DNA of 64,000 nucleotides from positions 1 through 64,000 of IMG/VR virus record IMGVR_UViG_3300050122_000263; one strand, written 5' to 3'. Position numbers and translations under genes: made by a program. Positions 32,455-35,979 of this stretch are shown here, in pieces. The notes below the pieces were generated by a model. It ran no database searches. It was not told the origin of the DNA and saw nothing but the letters and a program-made list of their open reading frames with translations. Position 1 is the stretch's first letter; each line of letters opens with the position of its first letter.

Positions 32455-35400
32455 TTAGGAGATATTGTCTACATCCTTCATAGCATAGAGAAGAGTCTCA
32501 TTAAACATGGATGATGCGTAGTAGCAAGCTGTTCCCATATACACCGTGCTAGCCATACGAATGCATTCCTTACCAGAGAGTACCCCTTCAACCATCCGCT
32601 TGATTGATTCCTCCTGTGCAACCAGCCTGCCGGCCTTGATGTTAATAGTGATAAGCTCGTTGAAGAACTGGATCTCCTCAGGCTGCAACTTATCACGCAG
32701 CTCCAACATGGAGATGACGCTCTCACCCACCTGCTTATCTGGAGGAGGCCCCTTGTTAGTTTGTTCCTCTAGCAGAGGAAATGTGTGACCAGGGCCCTTC
32801 CAGCGGCGCATATAGAGACCGGCGCAAAACATCAGATGAAAAGCCTGCCTCATTATATCCTTGTTCTTCTGATCCATGAGTGCGATGACGGCTTTGGTAC
32901 GATCCTGGGCGGAACTCATATCGAGACCATTGGTTATGACATCTTCGATAGCCTGATAAAGTTCAGCCTTACCCTCATCGCAACTCTCACCCTGTTTCAA
33001 CAAAGTGAGCAGCTCCATAAGCTCTGCTTTAGTGAAGTACTTCCTGGGATCTTCGGGGTGGCGAGCGATCAGCACATCGTTCATACACCTACAGGATTCG
33101 ATCAGATCGTTGTATTCATAGACCTGGTAGCGAGACCAGGTGCCATAGGCCAGCATTGGCACCTCCGAACTAGTAACTTCCGTCAGCCCAGTTACAGTGA
33201 CCTTGTTCTCGGCATAGCGTCGTTTTGGATCAACCGGAATGAAGAAGCTGGGAGACTCGTAAAGGCGATTAATTGCTCTAACCAACTGTGCCCTGCCGCT
33301 ATAGGCAGGATAAACCCCTGTCCAGGAGATCAAGACGTTATCCGGCAACTGCATCAAGTAGCCTAGACGCCATTCTTCTATCGCGAGAAGATCTCGTTTG
33401 AGAGGATCACAACTCAGCGGCCCACCGATATACGGATCATTCCATCTTGGGTTATCTGCTAGAATATCCCCGATCGACCTGGTCCCAGTGATGCAGTATT
33501 TATAACTGAACAGGTTACCCAATGTATATTCCCGAATCTGTGTCATGGAAGCTTGTTCATAACCACGGGTGCAAATCGACATATTTCTAGTTCCTGGGCA
33601 TACCATGCCGAACTCAAAGTAGAGCTCTGAAGGATATATCTCACCTTTGGCCAGCTGAACTACCAAAGATTCCAAGCGATCCGGTTCTCTAGCAAGAATC
33701 TCCCAGATCTCAGAGCCGATGTAAAAATGAGTAAAATCAGACACTAGCTCATAGCGTACCCATTCACAATAACGCTCTTTCTTGGCGGCATAACTGGCGG
33801 GCACCCCTTGCAAGATAGTCCGCACCATCTCATCTGGAGACATAACAACAGTCATCTCTGTCTCATAACAAGGTAACAGCTTAAGAATAGCCTGTCTTAG
33901 CTCTGTGCTTGCTTGTAGCAGAAGTGTGCTGTAGCTGTGAGGTATTGAAGCATGTTTCAAGAAATAGGCGTATTTCAGATAGGATGGGATATGAGCATCC
34001 TCTACCCTACCCACTTCGTGCAGAGCAGACCAAATTCGACACACATAGGATGGCCGAGCGTTAAGGGATATTAGATCAATCCTGTGAACCTCTCTGATCC
34101 AGCTCCAATTCTCTTGATCCAGAATCCTCAATCTGTCAGCATCCATATCTTGAGGGTTAATTCGTCGACTGAGTAGCATATCTATGAACTCCTTCATGGT
34201 CAAGTGCTCGTAGATATTAATCTCTTGGATACGAGCTAAGAGGGCTTGATCTGCTGGAGACAACTGCTCAGGCTCTGGAGCTTCTGGGGCAGATTGTTCG
34301 GTGGCTTGTGAAGCTCTCTCGAATGAAGCTCTCTGGAAAACTCCCGGAAAATCTCTCTGGCGAGTGTTTGGCTGCTGAGATCTCCGAACAGTCTCTGGAG
34401 CTGGTACCCCAGTTCCCTGGAAAATTTCATCGAAAGCTCTCGAAAAAGGCGATCCATCCCGCCTTCCTCTTGTCGTCATTGTAATAGGGTAGAGCCGCTG
34501 AGATCTACGGATGGTCTCTGAAGATTCATCACTATCCGGCTCTTGGATGGCAGCTGCTCTTGTCGTGCGAGAATTGTGCAGATCAGATGCTGAGGTAACT
34601 TGTACTGGGGTCCTTTGGAGATCTGGATCCGCCGCAGATAGATGACCATCTGGCCCACCTACAAAGTCTAACATGTGATCACCTCTAGATACAGCCTCAT
34701 TGTCAAGTTTATGGGCTGCCAGCTCTGCGACTGTGAATAATGGAATCCTGGTCTGCAAGCTAGCACGGTGTCGCGCTAATTCTGTAGCCTCCCTGGCAGC
34801 ATCAGCGACCGAGCTTGCACGAGCTGCCACAGAACGCTCTTCAACTTCCTCAGAACCGTCAGAAGTATCTTCGTAGGAACGCTCAGAACTATCAGGATCT
34901 GAACAGCGTGTCTCAACACTGTGACGCTTAGTTGCATCGATTACCTCCCTGACACGGTCATGCTTGTCACGCGATTCTCCAGTGCCCTCAGAAACATGCC
35001 TAGAGCTCTGAAGATCTGTATCAGCTACTTCCTTGAGGTGGATATCGAATCGCCCCAATCCCCTGATCTCATTACGTAACACAAGCTCTCTGACACGGCC
35101 ATACTTATCAAGAGATTCTTCTTGCCTCTGTCTGTCTGGGGAGCGGGGAACTGGTAGGGAAACAGGTGAAACTTGAGTTTCTATCGGTTGCTCCGGAATT
35201 GCCCTTTCTCTATTGATCTCATAGATATATGGATGTGTTCTATGTCTACGGGCAGGGATTGGCTTTGATATATCGGCCTTCCCAACATATGCGGTTGTTT
35301 TGTTGGCATGTTTATAGACAGGGCTAGGAGGCTCATCGTTTTCAGAGGAGGGAATAAGTGGATCTCTTGCAGGTGGAAGGGTGTCATCCCGAACAATACT

Positions 35401-35979
35401 GGGATAGAGACTCTTAAAGTATAACTTCGGAACGGCTGTAGATAGAAGCGGATTTGGAGCATCATAGAAATCGTGATCATCTGTGAAGAGACGCCGTCTC
35501 ACGGCAGGGTTCCTCAGTTGTCTCTGTTCTGCAAAGAGTCCAGATAACATGCCCTCCTCTAGTGTGTCTTCAGGATTACTCGCAATGGCTGGAGTTGCTG
35601 GAGGATTGGCATCAGGAGCATGAAAGCCTGTATTCTGCTCAGAGGAATCTGGTGCTTCAGACGCAATATGAGAACGAGATTTAATAGCATTAGGGTGAAG
35701 ATACTGTTTCTTGTGAAGAGATGATAGTGGTGTCGTGGATTCATAAACAAGCTGGATATCATGGGGCATCGGTCCTGGCTCTGCCATAACGCTGTCTGTG
35801 TCGGAATAGCGAACTTTACCTTGATGTCGTAGAATCTCAGCAAAATAAGGATTGATCCATGAAGCAGGGAGCTGAGATCCAGTTTCCTGAGTATCATCTG
35901 AAACACGCTGACGCTCCAACTCCTCCCTCTCAACAGCCCAATCTTGCAGATCTTCTTGGCTTCTAGATGTCCCTTCCAT
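32455..35979 (-). CDS. Large protein: disordered N-half with PolB-like motif relics, globular C-half of unknown function
   Basis: 1174-aa ORF; N-half S/E/R/P-rich containing YSDTDSVM and FKSLYPSIV; C-half helical with AGLYMRRWKG and CIRMAS. Confidence 0.8.
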   Translation of the reverse strand: MEGTSRSQEDLQDWAVEREELERQRVSDDTQETGSQLPASWINPYFAEILRHQGKVRYSDTDSVMAEPGPMPHDIQLVYESTTPLSSLHKKQYLHPNAIKSRSHIASEAPDSSEQNTGFHAPDANPPATPAIASNPEDTLEEGMLSGLFAEQRQLRNPAVRRRLFTDDHDFYDAPNPLLSTAVPKLYFKSLYPSIVRDDTLPPARDPLIPSSENDEPPSPVYKHANKTTAYVGKADISKPIPARRHRTHPYIYEINRERAIPEQPIETQVSPVSLPVPRSPDRQRQEESLDKYGRVRELVLRNEIRGLGRFDIHLKEVADTDLQSSRHVSEGTGESRDKHDRVREVIDATKRHSVETRCSDPDSSERSYEDTSDGSEEVEERSVAARASSVADAAREATELARHRASLQTRIPLFTVAELAAHKLDNEAVSRGDHMLDFVGGPDGHLSAADPDLQRTPVQVTSASDLHNSRTTRAAAIQEPDSDESSETIRRSQRLYPITMTTRGRRDGSPFSRAFDEIFQGTGVPAPETVRRSQQPNTRQRDFPGVFQRASFERASQATEQSAPEAPEPEQLSPADQALLARIQEINIYEHLTMKEFIDMLLSRRINPQDMDADRLRILDQENWSWIREVHRIDLISLNARPSYVCRIWSALHEVGRVEDAHIPSYLKYAYFLKHASIPHSYSTLLLQASTELRQAILKLLPCYETEMTVVMSPDEMVRTILQGVPASYAAKKERYCEWVRYELVSDFTHFYIGSEIWEILAREPDRLESLVVQLAKGEIYPSELYFEFGMVCPGTRNMSICTRGYEQASMTQIREYTLGNLFSYKYCITGTRSIGDILADNPRWNDPYIGGPLSCDPLKRDLLAIEEWRLGYLMQLPDNVLISWTGVYPAYSGRAQLVRAINRLYESPSFFIPVDPKRRYAENKVTVTGLTEVTSSEVPMLAYGTWSRYQVYEYNDLIESCRCMNDVLIARHPEDPRKYFTKAELMELLTLLKQGESCDEGKAELYQAIEDVITNGLDMSSAQDRTKAVIALMDQKNKDIMRQAFHLMFCAGLYMRRWKGPGHTFPLLEEQTNKGPPPDKQVGESVISMLELRDKLQPEEIQFFNELITINIKAGRLVAQEESIKRMVEGVLSGKECIRMASTVYMGTACYYASSMFNETLLYAMKDVDNIS

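Follow-up and report, generated by a model that had tools for sequence, protein, structure and literature searches.

How did motifs of a family-B DNA polymerase (PolB) come to lie, in the wrong order, within a viral protein that is otherwise unrelated to polymerases? The question is raised by P0001, a gene on the minus strand of a 64,000-nucleotide stretch of DNA (the window), which represents the first 64 kb of the 582-kb virus record IMGVR_UViG_3300050122_000263. The sequencing runs containing this record are peat metagenomes, and its source is a giant virus (Nucleocytoviricota). A first-pass annotation, made from the DNA letters, had noticed polymerase-like words in the P0001 open reading frame (ORF) and proposed that shuffled pieces of a polymerase gene had been captured there in frame. 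Our analysis suggested that the first ~215 codons of P0001 are probably an evolutionary relic of a PolB gene, which would have been rearranged, decayed, and absorbed into a growing disordered tail.

The polymerase-like words were found by translation where the annotation had placed them, and its coordinates cover their cores. RHQGKVRYSDTDSVMAE occupies amino acids (aa) 51-67 of P0001 (window 35779-35826), with the core YSDTDSVM at 35785-35808. It is followed by DIQLVYE...LHKKQYL at aa 74-94 (35698-35760) and then by AVPKLYFKSLYPSIVRD at aa 182-198 (35386-35436), with the core FKSLYPSIV at 35392-35418. The record also contains a true polB gene (G000:236969-240820), whose product P0151 is a delta-like family-B DNA polymerase of 1283 aa that scores 124.7 bits against the Pfam family DNA_pol_B (PF00136). 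In the six-frame translation of the 582-kb genome, SLYPSI and Y.DTDS[VIL][MF] each occurred twice, only in this resident polB and in the P0001 ORF, compared with 0.12 and 0.002 occurrences expected from composition. The joint expectation of both words within 200 aa of one frame is about 8e-8 per genome.

The similarity extended beyond the two short words. Residues 1-260 of P0001 were aligned by hhalign with a profile of nine related giant-virus PolBs, and a profile of 120 PolB sequences was used as well. With the nine-sequence profile, aa 154-197 aligned with PolB 527-579 (E 2.8e-4). With the 120-sequence profile, motif C and the KKxY block were joined in one alignment of 43 columns (aa 51-93 with PolB 834-915, E 1.2e-4), and motif A was recovered too (E 1.1e-3). 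Among 120 controls with shuffled or reversed sequence, the best E-value was 0.044, and none came within 40-fold of either real E-value. When all 3755 six-frame segments of the genome were scanned, the two best matches outside polB were both in the P0001 ORF. When the first 300 aa served as a tblastn query on the genome, motif C and motif A of polB were the two best non-self matches, and in a shuffle test with a hidden Markov model (HMM) of PolB the real N-terminus ranked second among 20,001 sequences. The summed score of the top two Smith-Waterman alignments was equalled by one of 600 shuffles, and the single top score by 3.5% of them. Judged from these comparisons, aa 34-94 and 154-213 share a common origin with the PolB palm, and the proposed derivation of the pieces from a polymerase gene, in frame, held up, with E-values of 1e-4 to 1e-3 and far weaker ones for the shuffles.

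No PolB signal and no further PolB pieces were detected in the other five frames of window 34700-36500, which include the upstream intergenic region, and no further relic was found among the 3755 segments of the genome. A 102-codon open segment at window 1910-2215 (-) contains a stretch weakly resembling motif A (IIITDPACFYPAMM..VLPP), which at an hhalign E of 0.0085 ranked 11th genome-wide and was regarded as noise.

The canonical order of PolB is N-terminal domain, exonuclease, motif A, motif B, motif C, and thumb. P0001 departs from it: the block of motif C and KKxY (aa 34-94) precedes the block of motif A (aa 154-213), with both in frame, and the permuted order and shortened spacers reported by the annotation were reproduced in the profile alignments. 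The features of the gene are listed in Table 1. The core of relic 1a (aa 41-65) aligned with PolB 826-848 at hhalign E 6.4e-4, and BLAST against the resident PolB extended the match to aa 34 (PolB 812); relic 1a as a whole has a 5-aa deletion relative to PolB. Relic 1b taken alone reached only E 0.39 with the nine-sequence profile, and it is collinear with relic 1a. Because the two abut, PolB 849-887 (~39 aa) has been cleanly deleted between them. No similarity to PolB or anything else was detected in the spacer, which gave no hhalign match with either PolB profile. Relic 2 aligned at E 2.8e-4 to 5.6e-4 over 60 columns with 37% identity and deletions of 9 and 6 aa.

Table 1. Features of the P0001 gene in window coordinates, in the order of translation.
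Feature	Position	Strand	Description or basis
Whole gene P0001, 1174 aa	32455..35979	-	ORF list and translation; 560-aa orphan N-terminal extension and conserved C-terminal region
PolB relic 1a, aa 34-65	35785..35880	-	Counterpart of PolB 812-848: helix before motif C and motif C hairpin (YSDTDSVM)
PolB relic 1b, aa 66-94	35698..35784	-	Counterpart of PolB 888-916: strand ending in KKxY (here KKQY)
Spacer, aa 95-153	35521..35697	-	Rich in P, S, A, E; predicted coil
PolB relic 2, aa 154-213	35341..35520	-	Counterpart of PolB 527-601: pre-motif-A, motif A (Asp to Tyr), SLYPSI, TL..PP..IP
Rest of orphan extension, aa 214-560	34300..35340	-	Sequence of low complexity (R, S, E, D, A, P)
Conserved C-terminal region, aa 561-1174	32458..34299	-	Representative search, paralogues, AlphaFold model

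Altogether, ~121 columns could be aligned to PolB, 43 of them (36%) identical to the resident protein. Like the family-B DNA polymerases (PF00136; delta-like clade, Nucleocytoviricota and eukaryotes), P0001 has the pre-motif-A segment, the SLYPSI word of motif A, the helix ahead of motif C, the Y.DTDS of motif C itself, and the KKxY strand, but it keeps only ~120 of more than 1000 residues, in the order C then A and with four internal deletions. By this comparison, the PolB-derived sequence in the N-terminus is ~120 aa in two pieces in the wrong order, and not a new enzyme.

Many features required of a polymerase have been lost. Of the 33 positions that do not vary among the nine PolBs, 21 (64%) are kept, including the DTD of motif C (YSDTDSVM) and KKxY (KKQY), and 12 are lost. 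The lost residues include R821 (the Arg of the ITAxGR helix), C567, G560, and the metal-binding Asp of motif A (D569 of the resident PolB), which was correctly reported to be Tyr in P0001 (LYFKSLYPSI). The helix after motif A is interrupted by a deletion, with Pro-rich sequence in its place. No alignment to PolB 602-811, which would cover motif B (KxxxNSxYG) and the fingers, was obtained with the 9- or the 120-sequence profile, and neither profile found the KHANKTTAYVG stretch, so that the suggested echo of motif B was not supported. The exonuclease, N-terminal domain, and thumb of PolB were not found by the PolB profiles, exonuclease or thumb similarity appeared in no frame, and a Pfam scan of whole P0001 and of its fragments gave no DNA_pol_B match even at E <= 10. 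Outside the relics, the host protein showed no match to PolB, as had been stated. With its catalytic residues and modules missing in this way, the P0001 N-terminus cannot be a working polymerase, in agreement with the annotation.

The relics are embedded in a 560-aa extension enriched in P, S, E, D, and R residues. In a single-sequence AlphaFold model of aa 1-330, the predicted local distance difference test (pLDDT) score was 48, and aa 53-280 were modeled as coil (pLDDT 38-52), so that both relics are crossed by predicted coil. A helix was predicted at aa 44-52, matching the helix before motif C. The model and the composition suggest that the extension is probably intrinsically disordered.

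The C-terminal part of P0001 is conserved. Its last ~300 aa (YMRRWKGPG...CIRMAS) form a domain common to ~400 representative proteins, mostly from giant-virus metagenomes, of which 228 matched at E <= 1e-10; hypothetical protein HVR_LOCUS1114 of an uncultured virus is an example. E-values against representatives other than P0001 itself and its paralogues reached 1e-33, and the GMYMRRWKGPG and CIRMAS blocks were nearly invariant. In a search of 1.84 billion representatives, all ~400 relatives matched the C-terminal part only, mostly aa ~870-1163 and some from ~560. Two paralogues in the genome (479373-481526 and 150977-153247; 717 and 756 aa) can be aligned with P0001 from its aa ~560 onward, and their own N-termini are short (116-160 aa), unrelated, and low-complexity. 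The check proposed in the annotation, whether homologs of this domain lack the N-terminus, had a positive outcome: the other members have neither the extension of P0001 nor a PolB-like stretch, and across the family unrelated N-termini of variable length are seen.

The C-terminal 615 aa gave a confident AlphaFold model (pLDDT 86). Structural comparison (Foldseek PDB, AlphaFold DB clusters, VIA-align wide, and Atlas) returned no informative match, PolB was not matched in the PDB or AlphaFold DB searches, and a faint match to a PARP catalytic domain (E 0.035, template modeling score 0.15) was not credible. No Pfam domain is known for the family, and its members carry no informative names. The model is consistent with a folded domain of a giant-virus-specific, uncharacterized family.

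For the N-terminus (aa 1-560), no homolog was found by word-index searches with whole P0001 and with aa 30-250 or by exhaustive search of the 1.84 billion representatives. No orthologous locus was found in viral contigs, metagenome contigs, or the record of the nearest relative, whose PolB is 48% identical.

An orphan extension of this kind might not be translated at all. If the real start were an internal Met, the 560 N-terminal codons would lie outside the mature product, and the upstream frame would be a dying but still open pseudogene remnant. The paralogues, with only 116-160 aa ahead of the conserved region, agree with such an arrangement, as does the GC content at third codon positions, which is 0.35 for aa 1-215 and 0.39 for aa 216-560, below the 0.52 of the C-terminal part and at the low edge of the genome range (0.46 ± 0.07). 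However, 560 open codons at 47% GC are very unlikely to persist without selection. Moreover, in-frame codon-usage log-odds along the N-terminus were 0.13-0.34 bits/codon, typical of the genes of this genome (0.28 ± 0.11) and far above those of the other two frames. The extension also contains local duplications at 34945-34978/35086-35119 (82% identity, 141 nucleotides apart), 34371-34400/34494-34523 (80%, 123 nucleotides apart), and 34327-34357/34411-34441 (71%, 84 nucleotides apart), and a 15-nucleotide tandem at 34309-34338, and the spacings of all of them are multiples of three. The codon usage, the open frame, and the spacings together indicated that the extension is coding and has grown by in-frame duplication, and we regard an internal start as unlikely.

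In the same extension, aa 466-486 (window 34522-34584 (-)) gave a 21-aa match with 10 identities (..RT..A..QEPD.DE.) to the AEP-D5 primase-helicase encoded at window 18010-21117 (+), at its Walker B region (aa 691-711). The match had a shuffle p of ~0.02 and was not recovered by reverse tblastn, and it is probably a chance resemblance of acidic low-complexity sequence.

If the N-terminus is a PolB relic, from which gene did it derive? At the motifs, the DNA of P0001 is only ~50% identical to that of the resident polB, with scrambled synonymous sites, for example AGC versus TCT for the Ser of DTDS; the relic is therefore not a recent copy of the resident gene. When the relics were compared with 120 PolBs, the resident PolB tied for the top on the C block (listed second) and ranked 71st on the A block. 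The relic was somewhat nearer to the resident clade than to distant PolBs, in an alignment that was optimized on the resident protein. Scrambled synonymous sites combined with retention of 64% of the invariant residues would imply either that a diverged PolB source decayed fairly recently or that the motifs were under some constraint.

A partial polB copy, either a diverged paralogue or one acquired from a related virus, may have been rearranged. The likeliest route would be a tandem-duplication junction or a circularized fragment that was re-inserted, either of which puts C before A, and the local duplications in the extension make the tandem-duplication route plausible. Deletions would then have eroded the rearranged copy, with read-through into the gene downstream, and local in-frame duplications would also have enlarged the extension ahead of the folded C-terminal domain. 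The relic would now serve only within a flexible tail and have no activity related to polymerases.

Several observations weigh against a decayed PolB relic. The aligned stretches are short, and by conventional scoring the matches are marginal genome-wide: tblastn gave E 0.05 and 1.4, and the full-length PolB HMM recognized only two tiny domains, at E 0.002 when a single sequence was considered and E 7 for the whole genome. No source stands out among the 120 PolBs, and no orthologue is present in any collection searched. The survival of so many invariant residues despite scrambled synonymous sites would fit neutral decay only with a diverged source or long constraint. In addition, the predicted disorder is based on a single-sequence model and on composition.

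The survival of these residues could instead mean that the PolB-like stretches were selected for a function, as a small circularly permuted palm-like module or as a peptide mimic that binds or interferes with a polymerase partner. The residues that survive include the DTD and KKxY signatures, and the surviving pieces are exactly the palm-sheet strands and the helix before motif C, of which the helix was also predicted by AlphaFold. Permuted yet active palms do exist (PMC4666646). Against a function, motifs A and C of PolB are buried active-site strands rather than interaction surfaces, and in P0001 both relics are predicted to be coil. The catalytic Asp of motif A is Tyr, 12 of the 33 invariant residues are gone, the helix after motif A was cut by deletion and replaced with Pro-rich sequence, motif B and the fingers are absent, and the conservation is seen in no homolog. 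On balance a selected function seems very unlikely, and the mimic or decoy role that had been offered as an option in the first-pass annotation found no supporting evidence.

Less probable again is the specific form of this explanation in which the surviving pieces, which correspond to three strands and a helix from the palm sheet of PolB arranged with C before A, would fold, perhaps on a partner, as a minimal circularly permuted palm. If true, this would be the first DNA-polymerase palm in permuted form, and the module might act by binding metal, nucleotide, or primer ends or by poisoning or regulating the replisome of the virus.

Chance deserves still less credence. Two short polymerase-like words might have arisen independently in a low-complexity region, and the silence of Pfam, the genome-wide E 7 of the full-length HMM, and the 3.5% of shuffles reaching the top Smith-Waterman score would agree with that. 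However, the number of times that both exact words are expected together is minute, and their flanks match too, over 60 and 43 aligned columns with 37% identity. The two segments are the top two among 3755, no shuffle came close to either E-value, and the sum of the top two scores was reached only once in 600 shuffles.

Least credible of all is that polB reads were wrongly joined to the P0001 gene, as might happen in a record that is a metagenome assembly, because the gene and its 400-bp flanks were identical, with 0-1 differences, between contigs of two JGI samples and one Logan run, contigs from four runs showed no joint, loose end, or variant where they spanned the motif region, and polB reads could not be recruited or mis-joined at ~50% nucleotide identity. 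This agreement of independent assemblies contradicted the chimera that had been considered at the outset and indicated that the locus is not chimeric, within the reach of short-read assemblies. Over the whole gene, the sole variant across the four runs was a C>T at window 33165 in the contig of one run. The virus population looks nearly clonal across samples.

Besides P0001, the window encodes the AEP-PriCT-D5 primase-helicase, a collagen/HYR protein, and an F-box protein. Upstream of P0001, an ORF of 976 aa at window 36378-39308 (-) has no Pfam domain and no similarity to PolB; its Atlas neighbors are hypothetical proteins of Nucleocytoviricota, with BTB/Gad2-type proteins resembling it more weakly. 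The idea that this ORF is the front half of the decayed PolB was supported neither by its sequence nor by the Atlas search. At window 24675-27914 (-), a protein of 1079 aa carries long collagen triple-helix repeats and a C-terminal HYR domain, and its N-terminal part is weakly BNR/sialidase-like.

Some features of PolB in this virus and its relatives were also recorded. In three giant-virus contigs (L016, L017, and L019), the PolB of the relative contains an intein exactly at motif C (YGD / intein / TDS), and that of L019 has a second intein at motif B. Pfam PF14890 is present in many database relatives. The resident PolB has no intein. The motif F[ED][LVI][LVI]D(D) was counted 14 times, where ~2 occurrences were expected, and is spread over 13 ORFs of the genome; these include PolB (236969-240820) and ORFs at 358023-359549 (+), 503684-505150 (+), 80897-84913 (+), and 360338-364279 (+). 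Three of the occurrences are the very C-terminal residues (PolB ends in ...FELVD) and two are at the extreme N-terminus. The motif resembles a shared short linear motif and perhaps has a role in targeting, packaging, or interaction.

PolB-derived sequence in proteins that are not polymerases has precedents. The literature describes exapted, inactivated PolB derivatives such as chordopoxvirus F12 (PMC4304020) and the archaeal inactivated PolB (PMC2527604), as well as the C-terminal half of Pol epsilon (PMC2669801) and the helicase-inactivated pDNAP fusions of Polintons, Polinton-like viruses, and transpovirons (PMC5499653). They resemble P0001 in that PolB-derived sequence with disrupted catalytic residues lies inside a protein with another role, and several come from large DNA viruses or mobile elements. 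These derivatives are reported to retain a whole polymerase or exonuclease fold in the canonical order and to form conserved families. P0001, in contrast, does not have the complete fold, and its PolB-derived sequence is reduced to scrambled, apparently unfolded fragments in a single orphan protein.

A second parallel is offered by the RNA-dependent RNA polymerases of Birnaviridae and Permutotetraviridae, in which the motifs follow the order C-A-B and circular permutation has been proposed as the origin (PMC4666646). As in P0001, motif C lies upstream of motif A. Those enzymes, however, are active and folded and have their catalytic Asp residues and motif B intact, whereas the PolB-derived sequence of P0001 lacks the motif A Asp and motif B and is not predicted to fold. 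P0001 thus matches neither parallel: its PolB debris is fragmentary and scrambled and lies in an orphan, probably disordered tail.

P0001 reveals no new enzyme or system, and without orthologues it is a single anecdote. Giant viruses are nevertheless rich in orphan genes of debated origin, and for P0001 an orphan, probably disordered coding sequence could be traced, with statistical support, to scrambled fragments of an essential core gene. A decayed PolB relic at this locus would make P0001 an example of gene debris recycled into new coding sequence, with a C-before-A permutation in the palm of a DNA polymerase.

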